Shown: positions 17,173 to 30,582, numbered from the stretch's first letter. The stretch is DNA of 64,000 nt from Phaeosaccion multiseriatum (GCA_965112735.1 OZ218965.1:1984001-2048000); one strand, 5' to 3'. Numbers and translations are program-made. Notes: generated by a model not told the origin, from the sequence alone.

Positions 17173-17815
17173 GTTTGTGGACCAGCTTCAAAGCCCCTCT
17201 TGTCGAGTGCGTGGGCTGGGGGGATCTGTGTGGCCTAAGGGGGACAGGAGGAAGTGAACGAGTGGCCGCAAAAGGGGGATGTACGAGCACTTGAAGACAT
17301 CAACGTGTGCTTGGAGACACCTCCCTGGACTTATGAGGCGCCTCGGTGGAGAGACAAGGAGCTAGGAGGCAGGACGCTGTAGCTCAAAGGCGGGAGCGAC
17401 TGGTGGTTCGGAGAGGGCGTGGCGGTGCTCCACAGCAGGAGCAGGAGGAGTCAGCTGTTGGTGGTCACGGCACACCTCTTCCACATACACTGCCTCGAGT
17501 TTGTTCCGCTAGACTTCCAGGAGGGGTTGTGACCCCGTATACGATGGAGAGCAGCTGCGGACCTAGCTTAACTCGTGATTTCAAATTACATAACATTGTG
17601 CACCTTCTGAAAGGGACCCCTGTAACCTTTTCCTTCGGTTTGCGATGCGCCACCCCCCCCCCCCGACTCAACCACGGGCCCAGACGCTGCCGTTGCTGGT
17701 GCTGGTGCTGCTACTGCTACTGCTGCTCTGCTGCTACGCTTCCCCCGTGAAGGTCTAGCTCTATTAGCTAAGCCTTATAAAAAAAAAAAAAAAAAACACC
17801 TTATCGTACAATGTT

Positions 17816-18986
17816 TTAATCTCCGGTGGTGAAAAGAGGGGAGTGAATGTAAATCTCCTGCGGGGGACGGACGGGGAGGGGGTCAGGCAAGAGTGAGGAG
17901 GGGGGCTGACGAGACATCGAAGGTGTGTATGTGCGTGTGCTCCAGAGGGAAGGGAAGGGAAGGAAGGAAGGAAGGAAGGAAGGAAGGACAAAGCAACTCT
18001 CACTCTTCGCCCCCCTTCTCTTTCTTATCCCTGTCCATACACACACACAGACACCACCACCACGACATCGCTACCTCCCTCCGTCCGGATTGAGCAGACT
18101 GCCCCACCCGCAGGCACACGAAAGCACACGTATGTAAGCATACGTACCCATCCGACGAGGCTGAGAATGGCGAACCACGTCCCCGTCTTGATACCCTGTG
18201 AGGCAAGCATAGTAGAGCAGAGCAGTTGGTGATACAGAGCAGAGAGAGAGCAGAGTAGAGCAAATCGGGGGGTAAGGAAGTAAGTCGAGGTGAGTCAAGT
18301 CCACTCACTGCACTCCCCACGCCACCATCGGAACGCCTGACTAGAGCGGGGTGCAAAACGAACAGCACCGGGAGCGGTGAAGTGCCCTCCCTCGTCAACT
18401 CGGCCCACATACCTTCAGAATGGACCCTTCTTCAAACTTCTCTGCGGCGCTCCGTGTGTCCTCTAACTTAGCGGCCGCGGCGCTGCCTGAGATGGGCGTG
18501 AGAGAGCTCTCATACCTAGTGTCATCTGGCGACACTTCCTCCCCTCCCCCCCTTTCACCCAAGCTACCGGGGAGCTTGATTCTGGCTTGCTGCTCAGTGG
18601 GGGGGATGCGGCGGTCAGGAATGCAAAGGAGTAAGGAGAGGAGGGGAGGGGGACTTGAGCTTCCACAGATGACAATGGCGAAGGGAAGGATGACAACGAT
18701 GAAGGGAAAAGGTGGAAAAAAAAGGGGCAGTACAACGTACACTACACACATGACCTCCTTCTCCCTGAAAGTTGCCACCCACCTGTGGCAGTGTTTTCGG
18801 TTTGGGCATGCCCTGGGGAGCTTGCATGCCTCCCCAGTCTTCGTCAAAGAGCTCTGTCACAGTGGGGTCAAAGCTGAGAGAGCTGATGCTCCCTTTGATG
18901 TTCTCGATTTGCTCGCCAGATACCTGCAGAGAGCGGGAGGGTGGGGCAGATGGAAAGTGGGGCAGATGGAGAGTAAGGGAGAGGTA

Positions 18987-19064
<78 letters not shown>

Positions 19065-19534
19065 AGGGAGGGAGGGAGGGCCCGAAGGAGAGAGAAGCAG
19101 AGGGGGAGTCAACGCGAAGGACCTCACTCCCAAAAAAAAAATGGGCATTTACAGCCCCAGCCGTCGCATTAAATTCTCCACGTACTGGCCCTTCCCCGCT
19201 CCTTGCCTTGCTCCTTGCCTCACTCCTCACTCACCACCACGCGCTTCTCCTGCGCCTTGCCTCCCTCATCCACCCTCCGTCGCCGCCTCTTCTTCCCCGA
19301 CTTGCCCGACCTCGATCCCTTCTCCGCCCACAGACCCACTGCAGATCTCCTCTGCTGCTGCCCCGTCCACAACCCCTGCCCAAGCTGCTGAGTCCTGGCG
19401 CTGGAGCAGCGATGGGTATGAACGCCCCCGGCCACCCCCTGCCCACCCAACGGGGTCACAGCTGTGAAGGAGAAGCCAGCCACAGCCGTGACGCACAGTA
19501 AGAGCAGCGTGAGCCCTCCTGTCATCTCCCTCAT
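17816..19534 (-). CDS. Plastid-targeted hypothetical protein with a C-terminal transmembrane helix
   Basis: Signal peptide MTGGLTLLLLCVTAVAG|FSF (ASAFAP-like) plus transit peptide. Spliced exons VSGEQIEN..., QARIKLPG...SILK, GIKTGTWFAILSLVGW, EIYIHSPLFTTGD*. Introns contain (CT)n runs. Confidence 0.65.
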
Positions 19535-19648
19535 CCTTCTTTTTTCTCTTTGTTTGTCTTCATGATCCAGCGGGGCCCGTACGCTTCTAATTTTCCTTTT
19601 AGTCTTTTTTCTTTTTCGGTCAACAAAACCCATGAAATTAATTTTATT

Positions 19649-19985
19649 TTTAACACTCGATTTGCGTAAGAATCGCCCAAATCGCCCGATTTCTGGCCCA
19701 ATTTTTTTTTTGCACATATGCAGCAAAAGGACGCTATGAGAAGCGCTATAGCTCTTCGTGTAGCTCTTTGAGATCCCCACCGATCTATGGTCTTTCGGCT
19801 TTCATCGCCTCTTCCCTTCCGTAGTTGTCAGCTTTTCCGCAGCAGCACCCCCTTCCTCGACCCCTGACGTGCTATTATGCTATCTGCTATCGCCGGCGCC
19901 AGCCGGCGTGCTATCTGCTATTGCCGGCGCCAGCCGGCGTGCTATGTGCTATCGCCGGCGCCAGCCGGCGTTTTGTGCTATTCGC
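19649..19985 (+). repeat. Left TIR plus subterminal tandem repeats (gctatcgccggcgccagccggcgt x3)
   Basis: Inverted match to 28176-28586; ~31-nt units at 19886-19985, with related units at 28050-28125. Confidence 0.85.
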
Positions 19986-20235
19986 CCCCCCGGGGTCGGG
20001 GGTGGGAGGGTGCGCGTGCGGGGGGCTAGGAGCGGAGGAAGCAACTCACACGTGTTTCATTGCCATTAATTCGCGTCAGTTCTTGTATAGTATGCCTAAG
20101 GGAGTATATCAAGGTCCACCCTCTGCCTGGCCTGGCTGACCTGCTGCCCGTGCACCCCTACCTCTCCGCCCTGTGATTGACTGGCTCTCCGCTAGCTCAG
20201 CCGGCGGACGGCCCGATCGACATTGTGCTCGCCAA

Positions 20236-23200
20236 TCAGTCACTTTTACCACTAGGGCAGGCAGCATTCACTCCGTCACAATACCAGTCCCCTTCAGGAA
20301 GCGTAGAGAGGGGAGGGGTCAGGCAGTACGTGTGAAACTCCTCATCGCAGCCGTCACATAGCAACATTTTGTCGTGGTCAACATCTTTCTGACAGACTAG
20401 ACATGCAGTGGCTTCGCTGGAGCTAGAGTCTGCTGCTTTTGCCGTGCCACGAGACAAAGCCCCATAACTCTCGGGCTTGTTTACCGTGCGCCCACGTGAG
20501 GACATCGCCCCCACCACCTTTCCGATGATGTTCTTGCGCAGTGTTCTCAGGTTCAGCGCCTCCTGCTCGCCATCACTGCTATCGTCCTCAGACATGTCCT
20601 CTCCCATGTGCACGCTTGGGTCGGGGGGGGCGTATCCCATCGCCTTGGCCACCTCTTGGCCCTCCGCCTCTCTGTTGACAATCTGCTTGCACTCCTCGTG
20701 CTGCTCCTCCGTGATGGCAAACCTCCGAAGCCTTCTCTGCGCGCACACCCCTCCTGAAGCTGCATGTGAGCCTTCGATGTACATTGCTTCGTGGTAGCGG
20801 GGCAATGCGCCATAAATGGCAGCACAAGACACAGAAGCCTCTTTCCCGCCGTCGACTTCGTAGACGACTGCTGCAGCCCCATCCCCGTCCTGGGACTCGT
20901 CGGTAGAGTCCTGTTCAGCGACGTGAAAGTATGAAACACCAGGCTTTGCCGGAACCACCTTCTGCTTGGAGCCTCGTCCCTTCTTCGAGACGATCACCTC
21001 CTTCCGAAGATCGACGCGAAGCTGTGCAAGAAAAAAGCTCTCCTCCGACCCCTTGTCTGCCCTGACTATCACAACGTCATTTGCCCTGTAGAGAATGCGA
21101 GTTCGGACGGATTCACCGGTCTTCCGTCCTTTCTGTCCGCGCTTCCTCGCTCCCGAGCTCTCATGCAAGCGCGACAGGTATCCACTCGGGTCGTTGCTTT
21201 GCGCAGAGTTGGGAGCAAACGCCACCGAACGCGGGGCCGCTCCAACATTGTACTTCCTCTTGTTGGTTACACGCTGCTGCGGAACCTTCCTAAGACGAGC
21301 CGCCGCATTGCGAAGCGTCTGCGTGTCCTTCTTGCGCTGCTTCCGTTGCCCTTCGTCAAGCTTCTCCGCTACCCTTGGTCGCTTCAACACGGGTGAAGCC
21401 ACCAATCTGCTCTCGTTTTGCTCCAGCTGGTATCCCGCCCTGAGCTTTCGACCGCTGCTGTTGACGCTGCTTGTGCAGTAGGCAAAGCCCATGCTGGGGT
21501 TGGCCTTCTTCGCAGCCTCAAGCATCACAAGGCCCCTTCTTCGGGCATACTCAAGAGCGTCTGGAACATCCTGGCGGCCTTCCCTTTGCTTCGTGAAGAA
21601 AGTCTCAACATTGAGGGTCAAAACGCTCCTCATCTGCATCTTCTCCACGATGCCGCGAGGCACTCCCTGCTGACGGAAATGAGCGAGGAAGCATCAAGCA
21701 AGGAGCGAACAGCGAAGCCGTGAGACGAAAGGGCAAGGCTGATTTCCAAACGCACGCGCCCACGGACACGGACATTTTTACTCACGCACTCACGCACACA
21801 CACGCACACAGCCATGGGGAGCACCCCCCTTCTCACCTCTGCAAGCATCCGATGTAGCATCCGAGGTAGTGCCTGCAGGCTCGCCTTGATAGCACCTCGA
21901 ACTTCGCGTGATGGCATTCCTTCAGGGCCCTGGAGAGAGACCAGGGATTTGCCTGTGGCAGCTGATATCGCTTTCCCCATGTGACTGAGAGCCAAGTCGA
22001 CCACATGAAGCTTGGCAATGCTCTCCTCCATCGTGCGTGCGTTGTTTTGCATGTCTTTGCCATTCTCATCCAAGTCTTCGCCCTGGAGCTGATACGCCTC
22101 ACTCAACATCCGTTGTAGTGGGATGAGGTGCTGGGCGTAGACGTAGCAGTCCGAGATCATTCGAATGCACTGGTTTCCAGTGTCGGACAAGAAGAAAGCG
22201 TTGTACACGAAGCAGCCGAACGTAGGTCTGAACAAAGGTACTTTCGATGCCGTACCGCTGGCAGTGCTCTCTCCGGGTTCTGTGTTTCCCTGTCCGCCCA
22301 TCAGCACGGATGATCCCTTCCAGCTTAGCACCCCACTGTCACGACGAAGGAGAACCTTGACAAGCGCATGCAAACCTTCATCTAGCATGAGGATGACGAT
22401 CATATCTTCATCATCGTATGCACCGGGTGGGGCCAACGTGAGTCCACAAGGCTGAGTCCCCACGTGAGACTTCACGCACGTGAGGTGTGCGCGCCTTGGC
22501 TTCTCAACAGTACCATCTTCCTCGTCATCAGTCAGAGCCATGAGTGTATCTCCGTCATTGCCACTGCCACCCTCTGGTCCTCCGGCACGTTCCACATTGC
22601 CCTCCCAGACAAAAAGCGAGCTGTCGGCGATGCAGGCAACGCAGTCATGCGAGAGTGCTGTGAGGCCCGCAGGTCCCTTGGGTAGGTCACACAGCTTCTC
22701 GCTCACAGGTGCAAAAGGGTTGCCAGCATCAAATGAGAGCCGGTGTAGTGCTCCCCCCCCGCCAGGTTCCTCTTGGGTGACAAAGAGGTCGAACGCGCGC
22801 TCAGAGGACACGGCAAGCGCAATGGCAACGGGGCAACGGATGCCCTCCTCTTCTCTCTCCTCGAGGACATTCTCCTCAGAAGTGCAACGCTCCTGGATCC
22901 GACGGACCAAGGGCACTGCCTTCAAATTCAAATGCCGTTGCTGAGTCTGTCTCCCCCGACCACGCGCTGCTACATGCCCGTCCGGTTGCTGGTCGTCGTC
23001 ATCATCATCGTCGCCCTCCTCCGCCGCCGCGCGGGGTCCCCTGTTTCCTGGAAGAGCGGCCAGCACATGCACCACCCAAATCTGATTCGCTCCACTGTCA
23101 CACATGTACACGTAGTCGCCAACCACGACGAGAGACCCAAGACTCTGGAAGCAGTCGTCTCGCAGAACAACCTCTGTGGTACAAGGCACATGATGGGCCT

Positions 23201-25057
23201 TGAGCATGCGCAGATGCCTGCCTGAACGATCGGCGTTGAAGATCATGCCAGAGCCATGATGGTAGCCCATACCAGTCGGCTTCTGAGTCTGCGAGGCCAT
23301 GTTCTGATGCCAGAAACCCCACGGCTCCGGGCACACGGTCACCCCCACGAGAGCACGGCGCTTCTCCCGCTCCTCCTCTGAGAGTAGAGCCAACTGCAGA
23401 GACGCCGTCGTAACAGCGATTGCGCTCTCCACTGAGAAAGGATCCTTGTTTTCAATGGCGTCAAGGCCAACATTGGCTTGTACTGCTTCACTTCGAGCCG
23501 GGTCCAGATCGTGGAATCTGGCGCGAAGAGTTCGCAGTCCGACTAGCCAGCCCTGGCAGACGACCCACCAATTGAATGTCGTAGCACGAACACACTTTAC
23601 AAGGTGAGCCCCGTCAGGCAGTGCCTCATACCACCCCAGGGGGTCGTCCTCTCCGAGGGTTCTTGCCGCCATTTTCCGAATGAAGGCAAGCTGTGCGCCA
23701 TTACAGTCTGTTGAGATGCACAATGGTCGGAGACTCTTGCACACGAGCCCTTTCCTCTTGCACCTCGAGCAGACTCTGCTGGAGAACTGAGTCGCGCAAA
23801 CGCACTCACTTTCACCGCAAGGACCCTCCCCTCCGGTGGGACAAGCTTGGTGGCAATCACACGCCTCGCCCATCTCCACCCACGAGGGGTTCTCCCCCGT
23901 CAGAATCCGCTGCCAGAAAAGCTCGAGACAAGGGATGCAAACACGCAGCGCCTTCATGATTTCGGTCACGCTCGCGGCAACACTTTTGTAGTCACCCCCT
24001 GCGGTGTGAAGCTGAAAACCGATGGAGCCCGTGTATGCCCCTTTCAGATCCATCATCATAACTTCCATCATCTCGGAACCCAGCTTAGGTGCGTCCTCGT
24101 CTCGCAGCTGGAACAGAACGAGTAGCGATAAGGGAGGGTTGACAGGAGGCGAAGCAAAGGCGGGGCTGCAGCGTGAGCGAGCGAGCGAGGAGGCGTGATT
24201 AAGATTGACGATGGATCAACAGTGATTCTGCCCCGAAAGATCAGTGGGAAGGAGGGGACGCCACGCACCTGAGCATCAGACTTTTCCAGTATTGCCTTCG
24301 CCTGCTCCAGTGTTGTATTTCCAAACTGATGTGCATTGCCCCAATTGGTTTGGCTGGTTGTATCAGTATGATGGCCCTTGGCAATGACGAAGCCATCCAT
24401 TTGGACAGTCACGGGAACCACAATCTTCTCGTTGCCTTTGTCGCCAAGAGTGTAGGCTTGGTCGGCACAGAAGCGGGCGAAGACATTGACGACGTTGATA
24501 ATGTCTTCGACTTGCAGACCGTACCTCTTGATTAGGCCAGGCCTGCGCCTAATGAGTGCTCTCGGATGAAAGCCGCCTGTGTTCGCCCTGCGGAAGTAGT
24601 CCTTCATGGCCTGGTCCCTGGAGACGTTGGGGCCACGAACCTTCTTTCTGCGGGGTGCCCCATAGGAGAGCATGGAGCATGCTGAACCAAATACGTTCTG
24701 CTGGGTCTCATTAAACTGTCGCAGCGTCTCGTAGCCATTGAGCTGCTTGCTCGCGGCCACAGTCTGACGCCTGGACCAAAGGCCGCTGTTCATGACCCAA
24801 CGATGCACCGTTTGATACATGAAGTGACTCCGAGTAAAGTGCCCTCGATCAAGATGGAATTGGATCGCAAAGGGAACAATGTCGACATCGTTTACGTCCC
24901 GGGTAAGCTCTACACGCCCGCTGTCCGCGTCTTCCGTCACAGCCACCCGCCCATGGTCTTCTTCTGTCGCGGACGAGCCCGCGGCGCCCATCGCCTTTGT
25001 TTGTGGCCAAATGTGAAACGGCAGAATCTTTATTGGCTTATAGCTGGCTGGGCCCAT
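20236..25057 (-). CDS. Putative P-element-like DDE transposase (~1480-1500 aa) with Cys-rich insert, NHL-like beta-propeller, BAH-like domain and PHD finger
   Basis: Three ORFs joined in frame by introns 24268-24108 and 21836-21667. Motifs VQMDG (D ~24396), ISTDCNG (D ~23707), LPDGAHLVKCVRA (like P-type DxPHLxKxxRN) and SVLTLNVETFF (E ~21605, like QDxLExFF). Propeller blades (KPTGMGY..IFNADRS, VYMCDSGANQI, FFLSDTGNQCIR). C-terminal CLVC..LLCDGCDEEFHTYCLTPPL..PEGDWYC. Start is 25057 or 24991. Confidence 0.75.
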
Positions 25058-25087
25058 GGCTGGGCCCCACTGGTTCAAAAGTCCTTC

Positions 25088-27876
25088 ATGTCTGGCCGCG
25101 ATGGAGGGAGGAGTTGGGGGGGGGGGGGCGACTACTACAACAGCAGGAGAGGCACGCCAAGTCCAGTTGGCAGCAGGAGTCGGAGCCGGGAGAAGGCCCC
25201 TGAGAGGGCGAGGAGAGGGAGGAGTGCCAGCAGGAGTTGGAGCAGGGAGAAGCACAGTGAGAGGAGGAAGCGAGGGAGAAATGCCAGCAGGAGTCGGAGT
25301 AGGGGGAAGGACACCGAGAGGAGGAGGGCAGGGAGAAGTACCAGCAGGAGTCGGAGCCGACCCAGATCCGGAGGAGGAGGAGGGAGGAGGGAAGGAGAAA
25401 AGGGTCGAAGCAAAGGGAGACGGGGCCGCAGTCCCAGCGAAAGAGGATTCCCAGCAGGCGCGAGGAAAATGCGTCGGAACCAAAGTCCCAGCGACAGGGG
25501 AGTACGCCGAAGCAGCCATTCACAACACGCTTCTCACGAGCTGGGGTGGGAGGAGGGGGGGCGGCTTGAGGACACCTATCTCCAGAGTACGGCAACCTTG
25601 GCATCGTCTTCTGAGGCACAAGACTTCGATTATGCCTTGCCCCTGAGTGCAGGGATGGGACAGGCAAAACCTACCCCTCTCATGTTCGCGCATGTGGGGA
25701 CATTTCCAAGAGGATGCCTCAACCCCGTCGAGGCTGATTTCAGTCTCGGCACATCGATGTCCTGCAACACGACCGAGCTCTTCGAGACCTTGCCCTACAC
25801 GTTCCAGCTGGCTAATGAAGACAAGCGATTCTCCAGCTTCAAGGCCTTCCGTGGACATTTGACCAGCGAATTGCTCTTTCAGACGGAACAAAAGAAGAAC
25901 GACATCACGATCCGAGCCTCCACGGCATTCAGACGTGGCAGAGGGTTGGATACAATCCGCGACGACGTCTCCCTGCGCCGCGTGGTACGTGTCGGGTACA
26001 ACTGCCTCTCGATGTTTGTGCATTGTCTGCTACGGCAGCAACCCTTTCTTAAACCCGCCCCCCCCCGCCCCTCTCTGTCTCTTTCTCCAACACACACCCA
26101 ATACAGGTGCGCTCGTTCTACACTTTCCCTCCGGGCCGTATCGATCCCGACAAACGGTGGAGACTGGATCTGTACTGCGAGCTACGCCCGAAATCAGGGG
26201 CGAGACAGCAGGAGAACGTGCAAATTTGCCTGTCTTTCCCTACCCAATCTCTGGACAGCGCCACAGATTTTTCGACCCATACCCCACCCAAGAAGGCAGG
26301 TCATCGAGGTGGTGCTGCCCGTGTCAGTGAGACCACCAGTGATAGTGAGGGAGAGAGTGCCGGCGGGACGAAAGGCGGGAAGGCGGGGCAAGAGGGGGCA
26401 CTGACGAAGAAGGCGAAGAGCTGGCTCCACGCGCAAGGAACCAAGTTCTTTTATCTTTTGCGGGAAATGCCTGATGTGGAGATGCAAACTCTCAGCGGAA
26501 GCAAGGTCGGTGATGCAGCAAGCTTCGTGAAGATCCATACGCCAGCTTTGATTCAGCTTGAGGCCAAAGCGAACTTCTCCATCAGACACGCCAGAACATC
26601 ATTGGATATGCTGGTATCTGTTGTGTGCACCAGGCCTGCTTGTCAGAGCGCCGGGAAGGGCAAGTACAAGCCTCAGTGGACTCATTTGTCTGGCGTTAAG
26701 CGCCACAGAGACTCCCACTCATCGAGCGGTCAGAAAAGCATGCAAGCTGCACTCTCTCACTTCCTACTGAAGACGGCGTTGGGGAAGCAGGAGGAGGAGG
26801 AGCAGGAGGAGGAGGAGGAGGAGGATGATGGTGGTGGTGATGATGATGATGATGAGGAGGAGGAGGAGGAGGAGGAGCAGGAGGGGGGGGAGGAGGAGGA
26901 GCAGGAGGAGGAGGAGGAGGAGGAGCAGGAGGGGGGCAGCAGCCCTTCTTCCCACCAGAAGAAAAGCAGGGCCATGCCTGCGGCACAATCAGTGGCCGAA
27001 GCTGAGCAGCTGACAGGGGACATGAAGGCGAGGCTGCTTGTCCTCGGCGCTGAGCAGGACATGCACAAGGAAAAGGGGGAGTACACCTCCTTCTTTTTGG
27101 ACGCGATGATGACCACTGTATCCGTGAACGGAAACAGGGCACTACTCCCGTGCGCGTCTCTTGGTCACATTTTCAACCCAGCTAACTCCCCCATGCCCAA
27201 CGTGTTGGCGACGGCTCCGAAAGGGTTCCTGCCGAAAGGTTACAGGGAGTCTGGTCTTACAATGACGAAGTGTGAGCTCCTCGTCCTCCCTGCGAGTTTC
27301 AGCGGCCATTTCTCGACTGTCGCTGTCCTTCTACCTACCTCTGCAGCTAGTGACGACGGGGAGGGTGCTATGGCGTACATTCTGCACTTTGATACGGTCC
27401 GAAATGGGCGCCTCGGTCACCACCCTTCGAAGCGAGTGCTCCAAGCGACGCAGGTGTATGTGGAGAAGGTCATGGAGGACGAAAGAGCCCCTGGGACGGC
27501 AGCCCTCCGATTCCGGCAGGTCTTTGTTGGTGTGCCACACCAGAAGGCCGGCTCGAATTCTTGCGGTCCGGCAACAGCTCTATTCATGTCGAAATTGGCT
27601 GTGGCAGACACCAGCCCCATGCGCAAAGTGCTCTATGGTGTTGAGCAAGACAACAGCTGGGAAAGGGACGACGGTGTAGCGATTTTGTCTAGTGCGGCGG
27701 GGGCAAAGGAGACCGTGGACCGCTTCTTGGCCGCGTGTGGGCTGCCGTGTCTGACCTGCGAAGAGTATGAGGCAGAGAGAACTCGCCTCTTTCGGGCGTA
27801 CCTGAGCTCCGGGATGCGCAACGGTTCCTTGCCCGACGTTTACAACTCGGCCTTGCATAAGTGCGTCCTGGGTTAG
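25088..27876 (+). CDS. Transposon-borne Ulp1/SENP-family (peptidase C48) protease with RS-rich N-terminus, Zn finger and acidic tract (~888 aa)
   Basis: ATG 25088; intron 25985-26106 (GTACGT..CAG, phase 0). SGHFSTVAV, LHFDT and PHQKAGSNSCG give the H-D-Q-C set. CxxxxC...HxxxH finger. 57-nt RS repeats at 25171-25360. Confidence 0.8.
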
Positions 27877-28049
27877 TGAAGGAGAGATGGCTGCCTCGCG
27901 AGAGAGGGAGATGGGGGGAGAGGGGAACGCCAAGGTTCGCCCAGCCACCATTGTATTGGTAATATAAGACTGAAGGCTCGCATACTCTCTGCGCTCGACG
28001 TACGCTGATTAGGCAGGCAGCTAGGAGTGGAAAGGCTGTCGCAGGGCGT

Positions 28050-28586
28050 CTGCTATCGCCGGCGCGACGGGGCGTGCTATCTGCTATTCGCCGGCGCCAG
28101 CCGGCGTGCTATCTGCTATTCGCCGAGTGCAAATAGCATGCTATTGGGCGCCGGGGCGCCCAATAGCATGCTATCGCAGATAGCATAATAGCACGTCAGG
28201 GGTCGACCTTCCCGGGGGGGGGGACGGGGGATGTGCACGCCACGGAAATCGCTCATGGGCAGCTTGCCCGCCCTTCTGCAAGAGAACAGGCGCAGCGCTA
28301 CGGCGGCTAGCCACAGTGGAGCAGCAGCAGGACCCTTGGCAAGCCTGGTGCGATTTCCGTGGCGTGCACATCCCCCCCCCCCCCCCGCGGGAAGGGGGTG
28401 CTGCTGCGGAAATGCTGACAACTAGGGAAGGAAAGAAGTGTGGAAAGACGAGAGACTATGTATAGGTAGGCATCTCAAAGAGCTACACGAAGAGCTATAG
28501 CGCTCCTCCCAGCGTCATTTCCCTGCAAATGCGCAAAAACCGTGTTGGTCGAAATTTGGGCGATTTTTACGCAAACGGAGTGTTAA
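28050..28586 (-). repeat. Right TIR with subterminal repeats and two hairpins
   Basis: Perfect 20-bp inverted repeat 28133-28174. Foldback 28207-28395 with 27-bp arms 28226-28252/28350-28376. Confidence 0.85.
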
Positions 28587-28903
28587 TTAATTTTATTCTC
28601 CCCTTTTTTGCCTTTCATCTACTTGAGGCCTCATGTTTGTTTGTTTTTTCCTGTGTGCATCATACTTATATATTGAATTACGATTAAAATCTTCACCGAG
28701 AACGCCCACGTGAGCATTAACAGCGGCCTCGTAATCTTTGTCCTCGACACCCTTCATTTTCCCACTATAATCTTTTTATCTCCTCAACCCCCTTCAGGTG
28801 TGTGTGTGACACCCCCTACTCGAGGCCCTCGTAGCGCGACGACCTTCCTGCTCTCTCCTTTCTACCACGATCTATAACCCCCCCCCGGCACCTCTTGAAA
28901 GGG

Positions 28904-30582
28904 TCATGAAGTGGCTGCGTCTTCCAGCTGGCTGCACAGAAAGTCAACGAGTGAGTCCTCCGCCGTGTCCGCCTCGTCGAGCAGCTGTCCCCCCTGCTCC
29001 ATCTGTGACTGCTGCCCTACCACCGACTCCGGCGGCGGCTGCAGGCCCTGCACGCTCTGCAGGCCGGCCTCTGCCCCCGGATGCGGAGGGGGCGGAGGCA
29101 TATCATTAATGCCAGAGTTAATATACTCCGAGCTCATACCCCTCAGCAGATCCCCATGGAAGCCCCGGGGCGGCGGCGCGGAGGCCCCCCTGGGCGAGGA
29201 AGAGTCCCCCCTGGAGGGGGCCCGCTGATGCCCCTGCCCTTGCCTCCCGTCCTGGAGACGTGGGGCAGGCGACGAGAAGGCCGACCGGCTGATCTGCTTT
29301 TTCATGCTCGCCGGACTATGGGCATACGGTCATAACGGGCCCGGAGGGGAGAGAAGAGATGGAAGCAATTGGTGCGGTGAGGTGTGTGAAGGGCGGGTGC
29401 GAGCGCTGCGAGTCAGCGCTGTAGCAGGCAGGCCTCTAACTCTCTCTCTCCCTCCCTCCCTCCCTCCCTCCCTCCCTTCCACCGTCCGTCCGTCCGTCCC
29501 TAGTGACTCACCTCGCACCCTTGACCAGCCCTACCATAACCTTCTCCATGACCGCCATTCGCTTGCGGAGCGTGGTAATCTCTTCGTCCTTCTGCGCCAT
29601 TATCCGCTTAAGCTGTGGTTGCCCCTCCAGGCTGCTGACAATACCCTCAGCTGCCCCGCCCCCGCTCCCTCCTTCTCCACCCGCGGCTCCGGCTGCAGCT
29701 GCATCACCGAGCAGCAATGTATCAAGATCAATGTCGTCTTCCTCGTCCCGTCCGCGCTTCGTTCCTACGGGCACGGAGCACGGAGAGGAGGGTTTCACAC
29801 ACCACAAACGGGGTGGGTGGGGGGGGGGGGGGGATAGAGTGGGGTCAGAGAGGGGGCTTGCTCGAGATCGGAGCAGCTTCCCCGGGCTACACACACAACA
29901 CACAACACACAAGCGGTACCCCTCTGTTCGCGGCCTCCACAGCTGCCTCGGTAGGACATACAAAACACTCGAAAGGCGGCCTGTGCCTCATCCCACTCAC
30001 CCCCAGCACCCCCGGCAGCTGCGCCAGAAGCAGGAGGGAGGGTGAGCCCGGCCAGCAGGGGGCTGTTGATCTCGTCGAGCAGGGACGCGAGGTCGCTGCT
30101 ACCGGAGAGCTCCTTCTTCAGCCCGTCCACTTCTCCTCGCAGAAAGCGAACCTTGAAACGATGGCAGCCCACGGCAAGAAGTGTGGAGAGAGTAGACAGC
30201 AGCAGCAGCAGCAGCAGCAGAGAGGGGGCAGGAAGAGCGCATGGGGGTGGGGGTAAGAGGAGGAGGAGGAGAAGAACAACAGCACTCCCCGCCTTCTTTA
30301 ACCATACACTGCCATCCATACCCCACCGCACTGCCTTACCTCCGAGTACAGATCATTCTCCGGGTTATCGGGGTCGGGGCAGTGAATCTCCAGCTCCGAG
30401 CGCATGCCGGACAGATCGACACCTTCCTGCCCCTCCAACACTCCCCCGAGCCCATCGCCGAACTCTCCCCCACTGAGCCCCTGGTCCAAAAGCTCTGTGA
30501 GCTGCTGGTCCAAGAATCCCTCGTCGAGCAGCGTTGTGATGGCCTCCTGGAGTACATGAGTGTCGCACGACATGTGTGAGTG

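Follow-up and report, generated by a model that had tools for sequence, protein, structure and literature searches.

A stretch of 64,000 nucleotides from Phaeosaccion multiseriatum (GCA_965112735.1 OZ218965.1:1984001-2048000), called the window below, is eukaryotic in style, with about 58-60% G+C, GT..AG introns and microsatellites. We analysed the region at positions 19649-28586, which consists of two mobile elements, an inner DNA transposon nested in an outer palindromic element. The inner transposon carries two divergently transcribed genes, a large one on the minus strand for a transposase and a second one on the plus strand for a putative Ulp1-like protease. Taking the evidence given below together, we are fairly confident that the inner unit is an autonomous cut-and-paste transposon with a P-like DDE (Asp-Asp-Glu) transposase, that an NHL propeller occupies the insertion position of this enzyme, and that the element into which it is nested resembles a miniature inverted-repeat transposable element (MITE).

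By self-alignment of the window we detected an inverted repeat of about 205-250 nt with 85-88% identity, whose ends start at 19650 and 28586; the terminal 31-mer of this repeat occurs only at these two places within the 64-kb window. In a preliminary description made from the sequence alone, these arms, about 200 nt long, had been read as the terminal inverted repeats (TIRs), and a direct repeat of about 12 bp beside them as the target site duplication (TSD), of a single complete element spanning 19649-28586. Both outer repeats are real and far beyond chance, but a sharper pair of TIRs, beginning TCGACCCCTGACG, lies inside them and has its own perfect 6-bp TSD. When 19857-28212 (the inner unit and one CCTTCC) was removed in silico, the outer inverted repeat became continuous and was extended by 40 nt, of which 38 matched, so the outer palindrome predates the insertion and CCTTCC is the 6-bp TSD. 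The depth of contigs from three DNA runs of the same organism (X1, X2 and X3), which is a rough proxy for copy number, also separates the two units: in run X1, the summed depth was about 16,000 over the outer arm, as against about 70 in the unique flank (about 200-fold) and 579 in the transposon interior (about 25-fold). In addition, numerous contigs whose flanks are unrelated break off at 19647-19650, where the outer element itself ends, and in three records from other loci the match starts exactly at 19857. A related element from a metagenome contig, L001, likewise has a TIR start that resembles the inner type and not the outer one. In view of the inner TIRs and their TSD, the restored outer repeat and the depth, we rejected the outer repeats as TIRs of the transposon, and a single element over 19649-28586 is very improbable; the repeats belong to a separate outer element, and the true ends of the transposon are at 19857 and 28206. 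No further copy of either TIR type, outer or inner, was found in the 64-kb window.

The outer element is a palindromic, high-copy, MITE-like element of about 570 bp (19649-19856 together with 28213-28586), with arms of about 250 nt. Its flanking repeat of about 11-12 bp would suit a Mutator-like or foldback family. The corrected boundaries are relevant to any repeat library made from the P. multiseriatum genome. Long (GA)n/(GGGA)n microsatellites at 18976-19089 and 29431-29486 give rise to spurious long-range inverted repeats in repeat searches. The coordinates of all features are given in Table 1.

Table 1. Features of the nested elements (positions in the window; aa, amino acids)
Feature	Position	Strand	Remarks
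Putative autonomous P-like transposon proper, 8,350 bp	19857-28206		37-nt TIRs and 6-bp TSD; ends TCGACCCCTG...CAGGGGTCGA
Left TIR, 37 nt, TCGACCCCTGACGTGCTATTATGCTATC...	19857-19893	+	35/37 complementary to 28170-28206, first 31 nt identical
Right TIR	28170-28206	-	Counterpart of left TIR
TSD, left copy, CCTTCC	19851-19856		Identical hexamer at 28207-28212
TSD, right copy, CCTTCC	28207-28212		Perfect 6 bp
Three subterminal tandem repeats of ~31 nt, each with GCCGGCGCCAGCCGGCG palindrome	19883-19984		Candidate transposase-binding sites; repeat search
Two subterminal repeats of ~31 nt, right end	28049-28120		Same repeat family as left-end set
Transposase exon 1: helical N-terminal domain, Asp199 (24397-24395)	24269-24991	-	Likely ATG 24991 (alternative 25057); donor GTGCGT at 24268, intron GTGCGT...CAG
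Transposase exon 2, 757 codons, one uninterrupted reading frame: Cys cluster, Asp375 (23708-23706), Asp406xxHis409 (23615-23604), NHL propeller	21837-24107	-	Followed by GTGAGA...CAG intron
Transposase exon 3, 477 codons and TGA: Glu1020 (21606-21604), C-terminal region	20236-21669	-	Acceptor CAG 21670-21672
Cys-rich module between first and second putative catalytic Asp	23718-23939	-	12 Cys in residues 298-371; conserved Cys columns
Predicted six-bladed NHL beta-propeller, residues ~494-894, interrupted by acidic low-complexity loops	22149-23351	-	Mapped from P0006 residues 520-850 by alignment
C-terminal PHD finger, residues 1421-1463	20275-20403	-	Pfam PF00628, E 1e-11, 45.1 bits (cutoff 24)
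Second gene, 888 aa, divergent from the transposase gene	25088-27876	+	Exon 1 25088-25984, exon 2 26107-27876
Outer direct repeat ATTAATTTTATT, ~11-12 bp	19637-19648 (left), 28586-28597 (right)		Read directly in the sequence
Outer element, left arm (the 'left TIR' of the preliminary description)	19649-19856		Ends in the target hexamer; pairs with 28350-28586
Outer element, remainder: left-arm continuation to 28252, ~97-nt loop, right arm 28350-28586	28213-28586		Inverted repeat restored across the junction

The subterminal repeats inside the transposon are greatly over-represented: the depth over 19864-20060 was about 21,000 in X1 as against 579 in the element interior, which suggests hundreds of short non-autonomous derivatives with these ends. 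Repeats of about 31 nt are also found below the ends of L001, which has perfect 23-nt TIRs starting TCGGCCCCGGAC and the same gene layout, and in another related element, L006. A more distant relative, a 6.3-kb element coding for protein P0112, belongs to an animal clade. It is present in at least four copies (L007-L011; ENA assembly ERZ25067546 and one other) that are 99.7-99.9% identical, has a 17-nt TIR, GAGGGTCTCAATGGGGT, and genes in a single direction, and is without the Ulp1-like gene. With the termini read as GAGGGTCTC...GAGACCCTC, a reading backed by a differing flank base in L010, three copies have the TSDs TTTGTA (6 bp), TTACAA (6 bp) and TTAGGAA (7 bp). This animal-clade relative is probably active in its own genome too.

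The transposase gene consists of three minus-strand open reading frames (ORFs) which join in phase 0 via GT..AG introns. Read from the ATG at 24991, they form a stop-free frame of 1,475 aa; the N-termini of family members start near this Met. Homologues P0006 and P0014 align straight across the exon 1/2 junction, and P0002 and P0006 across the exon 2/3 junction. Since these intronless or longer homologues align unbroken over both junctions, the three-exon model is supported independently. P0006 itself is a protein of 1,319 aa encoded by a single ORF, with the same domain order as the window transposase. The two uninterrupted spliced genes of the preliminary description held good: the three-exon minus-strand and the two-exon plus-strand models both join in frame. 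The motifs MDG, STDCNG, DGAHLVKCVR and LNVETFF, whose P-like order had been noticed at the outset, all fall in near-invariant columns of the family. The putative catalytic residues D199, D375 and E1020 have the spacing D-176-D-645-E; the interval between DxxH and Glu, first estimated at about 600 aa, is 611 aa from His409 to Glu1020 and is mostly filled by the NHL propeller. The Cys-rich segment said to precede the second Asp is likewise present, and its Cys columns are conserved. Among the Pfam and NCBIfam models run on each exon, the PHD finger was the sole match.

An exhaustive HMMER search with exon 2 as query gave 104 cluster representatives at E<=1e-3 and 9 at E<=1e-30, all of them unnamed; a word-indexed protein search with the same exon gave no match. 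A search via the family member P0050 led to entries from Priapulus, Mytilus, Paramuricea, Porites, Oculina and Exaiptasia, every one of them labelled 'uncharacterized', and the clusters of the AlphaFold database (AFDB) added entries from Nematostella and Mytilus, some annotated as RING-type. Judged by sequence similarity, the family numbers more than 100 proteins, none of them named, and these come from protist-like contigs, cnidarians, molluscs and a priapulid. It is widespread yet unnamed, and annotation pipelines miss its members or call them host genes. Metagenome scans by protein alignment and by the L001 TIR gave no match.

We counted conservation in an alignment of 48 family members, where the denominators are the residues present in each column. 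The first Asp was conserved in 34/34 sequences and the second in 40/41; in the DxxH motif, Asp was found in 39/42, and both His and the Lys that follows the motif in 42/42. The Glu was found in 30 of 33 sequences, and the exceptions were ORF calls running into introns. At least nine Cys columns, each at least 90% conserved, lie between the two Asp residues. The motifs of the family can be written as DG[MT]xxKPG, SxDCxxxQ, PDxxHxxKS and TLxVExxFS, the last of them, around the Glu, more fully as T[LT]xVExxFSxxR. No Pfam model covers the family among the 48 members scanned. There was no match to a THAP domain in the exons of the window or in these members, as had been said of the window protein, and none to the GTP-binding domain PF21788 in the 48 members. 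The PHD finger is shared with P0002, P0003 and the L001 element, and occurs in 3/48 members. Other accessory domains vary among P0035, A7SZH2 and further members: PB1 was found in P0035 and SAP in 2/48, and RING-type annotations occur in entries from Nematostella and Mytilus. From these sequences, the N- and C-termini of the transposase family seem to be hot spots of domain accretion.

The structure was modelled on the homologue P0006. An AlphaFold2 model of residues 1-1200, made with the family alignment, had a predicted local distance difference test score (pLDDT) of 84.1 and a predicted TM-score (pTM) of 0.80. At about residues 520-850, 24 strands form six four-stranded blades, which matched the NHL domain of TRIM71 with a Z of 30.8 and Pizza6 with a TM-score of 0.83. 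At the sequence level, the family profile found NHL domains among the PDB sequences at E 3e-23, and these only, P transposase not being found there; phmmer of exon 2 against the PDB sequences gave no match. The Pfam NHL model PF01436 matched 6/48 members (best E 9.6e-10) and gave no match on the window sequence itself, to which the propeller was assigned through the alignment. In the alignment of the 48 members, the catalytic residues of P0006 are D226, D411, D431xxH434 and E963. The propeller is placed between DxxH and Glu because in P0006 it falls between H434 and E963, and thus NHL-like blades stand where P transposase has its GTP-binding insertion, as the preliminary description had proposed.

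A propeller in this position might also come from a captured or adjacent host exon that had been merged into the gene model by mistake. The acidic low-complexity loops which break up the region would fit such an error, as would the failure of the Pfam NHL model on the window sequence. However, the second Asp, the DxxH motif and the whole propeller lie in one stop-free ORF of 757 codons, the intronless P0006 has the same order in its ORF of 1,319 aa, dozens of relatives share this arrangement, and the model puts the Glu helix after the propeller. A separate propeller gene was rejected on the strength of the single ORF, the homologues and the model, and we give this explanation next to no credence.

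Fold searches with the whole model were swamped by propellers, and a propeller-free core of the homologue (P0006:100-544) was therefore folded separately, with a pLDDT of 85.3. Foldseek against the PDB returned P transposase (6p5a) first, at E 2.8e-6, followed by ISCth4 at 0.08 and by Transib and Hermes at more than 0.3. In VIA, 6p5a had a Z of 9.6 over 256 residues (chain 144-428), as compared with 5.5 for the HIV integrase core, 5.3 for Transib, 4.6 for RAG1 and 4.2 for Hermes. Against AFDB Swiss-Prot, the top matches of the core were P transposase (1.1e-5) and THAP9 (1.3e-3), and in the Atlas the closest clusters with a name are those with PF21787, PF21788, PF21789 and PF12017. The integrase and RNase H matches span residues of about 119-335 of the core model, so that an RNase H fold is confirmed for the part holding both Asp residues. 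A link at the sequence level comes from the Mytilus member P0127, which matched PF21787, the P-type RNase H N-terminal domain, with 26.7 bits against a cutoff of 24.6. The expected RNase H-like fold was thus found in the homologue, and the P-like character first ascribed to the transposase agrees with P transposase and THAP9 as nearest folds and with this above-threshold match. A profile search with the propeller-free core returned family members only, none with Pfam labels.

In P elements, the transposase has a THAP domain, a helix-turn-helix (HTH) domain and a split RNase H domain, into which a GTP-binding domain, helical almost throughout, is inserted between beta5 and alpha4; the TIRs are 31 bp and the TSDs 8 bp long (PMC7776569). 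P and THAP9 (6p5a; PF21787-PF21789) are by a clear margin the best structural match of the core modelled on P0006. They share with the window element HTH-like helices ahead of a split, RNase H-like DDE core, a D/CxxH motif that follows the second Asp, a Glu in a helix of the ...VE(N)FFS..R type, a large insertion domain that separates beta5 from the Glu helix, and short TIRs with subterminal repeats. On the other hand, the window element has no match to the THAP, GTP-binding-domain or C-terminal Pfam models, and a six-bladed NHL propeller is nested in its insertion domain. It also differs from P in the Cys cluster of about 75 residues between the Asp residues, which are 176 aa apart here and 73 in P, in the C-terminal PHD finger, in the second, Ulp1-like gene, and in the TSD, which is 6-7 bp in this element and its relatives. 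Immediately behind DxxH, the model has helices that can be aligned with the beginning of the P insertion domain (chain residues up to 428), so that a remnant of the GTP-binding insertion domain is possible there.

The fold and the PF21787 match would also be expected if the element belonged to an ordinary P-superfamily family that is already catalogued, for example in Repbase, and if the propeller and the 6-bp TSD were known features of that lineage; the presence of relatives in such well-mined genomes as Nematostella and Mytilus adds to this. Yet the named relatives are all 'uncharacterized' or 'hypothetical', no Pfam model extends over the family, a literature search gave no transposon with an NHL or other propeller and a DDE transposase, and the P review gives a GTP-binding insertion domain and 8-bp TSDs (PMC7776569). 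We regard this possibility as unlikely. Set against Pfam, the names in protein databases and the literature, with Repbase and Dfam outside the comparison, the most fitting description of the element is that of a new variant which lies in or next to the P superfamily. The preliminary description had called it unclassifiable and without a described superfamily; it is true that no named family with this architecture was found, but 'unclassifiable' was too strong, as the family can be put beside P/THAP9 by its fold and by a weak link in sequence.

The TSDs of 6-7 bp also bring to mind the Dada superfamily, whose members have TSDs of this length, are without TIRs and use small-RNA genes (tRNA, snRNA) as targets (Kojima and Jurka 2013, PMC3706591). 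Membership in Dada, a DDE superfamily with DxxH found in protists, cnidarians, molluscs and fish, would account for the TSDs (PMC3706591), for the DxxH motif and for the overlapping host ranges. A further likeness is that in both cases the transposase is large, is encoded by several exons and has additional domains within its core. However, the Dada motifs are K[IM]DSTKK, VDRDCC, LDVWHFMRR and STSLESFH, and the acidic residues are spaced D-68-D-176-E (PMC3706591, Dataset S1), so that both motifs and spacing differ from those found here (D-176-D-645-E). In a comparison at the level of motifs, 12 signature strings of our family were looked for in the supplementary files on Dada: 10/12 were absent, and 0/12 fell on a catalytic motif in the alignment. 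SDCE occurred twice in that alignment outside the catalytic motifs, and DGTA once, in a figure of the exonuclease. Moreover, the window element has 37-nt TIRs and a MITE-like target, as opposed to the missing TIRs and strict small-RNA-gene targeting of Dada, it has a propeller, which Dada has not, and its nearest fold is that of P/THAP9. Dada membership was rejected on motifs, spacing, TIRs, target and fold, and we see only a slim chance for it.

The combination of a propeller with a PHD finger is known from RAG2, which is made up of a six-bladed propeller together with a PHD finger (PMC4411706). In RAG1/RAG2 and Transib-RAG2L, a DDE recombinase works with both modules; here the two are in the transposase chain. 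In addition, some animal relatives are annotated with RING domains, which RAG1 has as well. The RAG systems differ in that their propeller is of the Kelch type and on a separate protein, their core is of the Transib type (Z 4.6-5.3, as against 9.6 for P) and their TSD is 5 bp. The parallel is purely architectural. The literature search gave no paper joining an NHL domain or propeller with a DDE transposase, RAG2 excepted. A propeller and a PHD finger in one chain parallel RAG2 and may bear on how RAG-like systems recruit accessory modules.

Ulp1/C48 protease genes are found within DNA transposons as a second gene or as a fusion, for example in the plant KI-MULEs. The second gene of the window element is spliced in frame over a 122-nt GTACGT..ACAG intron. 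Its exon 1 is RS-rich, and exon 2 codes for an acidic tract and then for a C-terminal region resembling Ulp1/C48 proteases, with the putative catalytic residues His698, Asp725, Gln778 and Cys785 in the motifs GHFST, HFDT and HQKAGSNSCGP. The C-terminal 298 aa (26980-27873) had an Atlas feature score of 0.95 with 189 shared, and 72 of the 100 nearest clusters were Peptidase_C48; Pfam gave no match for the gene, which is too diverged for PF02902. The protease exon is homologous to a 243-aa exon of L001 in the same position (E 4e-10), and the motifs around His, Asp, Gln and Cys are in register in the two. This indicates that the Ulp1-like gene is conserved in this clade of elements and not in the animal clade. 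No similarity to the second gene was seen in the large other-strand ORFs of L001 and L002, the 243-aa exon of L001 alone being similar, and the sequence of L006 ends before the region. Unlike transposons such as the KI-MULEs, this one has a P-like and not a Mutator-like transposase, and its putative protease is preceded by RS-rich and acidic tracts. Over 25088-25520, the RS-rich exon 1 has opposite it, on the minus strand, a long Pro-rich ORF (25519-24992), which is probably a low-complexity artefact and not an N-terminal extension of the transposase.

Other copies of the transposon were also looked for. The contig covering the interior was deeper than the unique flank in all three DNA runs (579 vs about 70 in X1, about 700-750 vs about 85 in X2, and 20.5 vs about 3 in X3), that is about 6-9-fold, and over 3.5 kb only 1-2 of its bases differed from the window. 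The excess depth together with so few differences fits several very recent copies. With its near-perfect TIRs, perfect TSD and two open genes, the transposon looks intact and was probably active recently. Such a copy would be a candidate to use in a transposition assay, and it might yield a new genetic tool.

Several points weigh against the reading of the inner unit as an autonomous P-like transposon with a propeller in the insertion position. The structures were all obtained from P0006, which is about 30% identical to the window protein, and were transferred to it by alignment; the TM-score to P transposase was modest (0.37), and the triad D199/D375/E1020 is put forward from conserved columns. 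None of the Pfam models for the P family picks up the window protein, and PF21787 was weak in only three of the scanned members (P0127, P0050 and P0113), one of them above the cutoff. The 6-bp TSD of the window lineage is based on one insertion, and in the flanks of L001 a clean TSD was not found, possibly because of a chimeric assembly of a multi-copy element. Copy number was judged from contig depth, with the roughness already mentioned. Finally, RNA support for splicing or expression was not found: run X5, the sole transcriptome-like run, had zero depth inside the transposon, yet covered the MITE arm and the subterminal repeats deeply.

The inner transposon inserted into the outer element and duplicated the 6 bp CCTTCC. 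In DDE transposases, the insertion domain is located where the DNA is cleaved; it is helical in the solved cases and GTP-binding in P. From the observed anatomy, family, ends and multi-copy state, and from the folds of the homologue, we infer the following biochemical roles. The N-terminal helices and the Cys module, which is probably zinc-binding, may read the TIR and the subterminal repeats, and the DDE site would cut and join with a 6-bp stagger. The propeller could serve as a platform for DNA or protein contacts beside the active site, the PHD finger may read histone tails, and the divergently transcribed Ulp1-like protease would be an accessory factor. A beta-propeller nested in this position would be a new solution to the role of the insertion domain and a natural experiment on that role.

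A bolder interpretation, which we offer tentatively and still regard as doubtful, is that the element is the first described member of a lineage of superfamily rank, sister to P/THAP9, with TSDs of 6-7 bp and a distribution over protists and marine invertebrates. Its transposase, with the propeller and, in this clade, the PHD finger in a single chain, would be a one-protein analogue of RAG1-RAG2, in which the propeller replaces the GTP-binding domain of P at the DNA junction and the PHD finger steers insertion to marked chromatin, and the element would be active at present.

Next to the nested elements lies a host gene on the minus strand (17500-19498) with at least four introns. It is transcribed in X5, which acts as a transcriptome: the contigs of this run skip the introns of the gene, seen as CT..AC on the plus strand, at 17857-18147, 18195-18411, 18590-18782 and 18922-19232. 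The assembled 5' end of this gene is about 150 bp from the nested transposons, which places the insertions in its promoter region.

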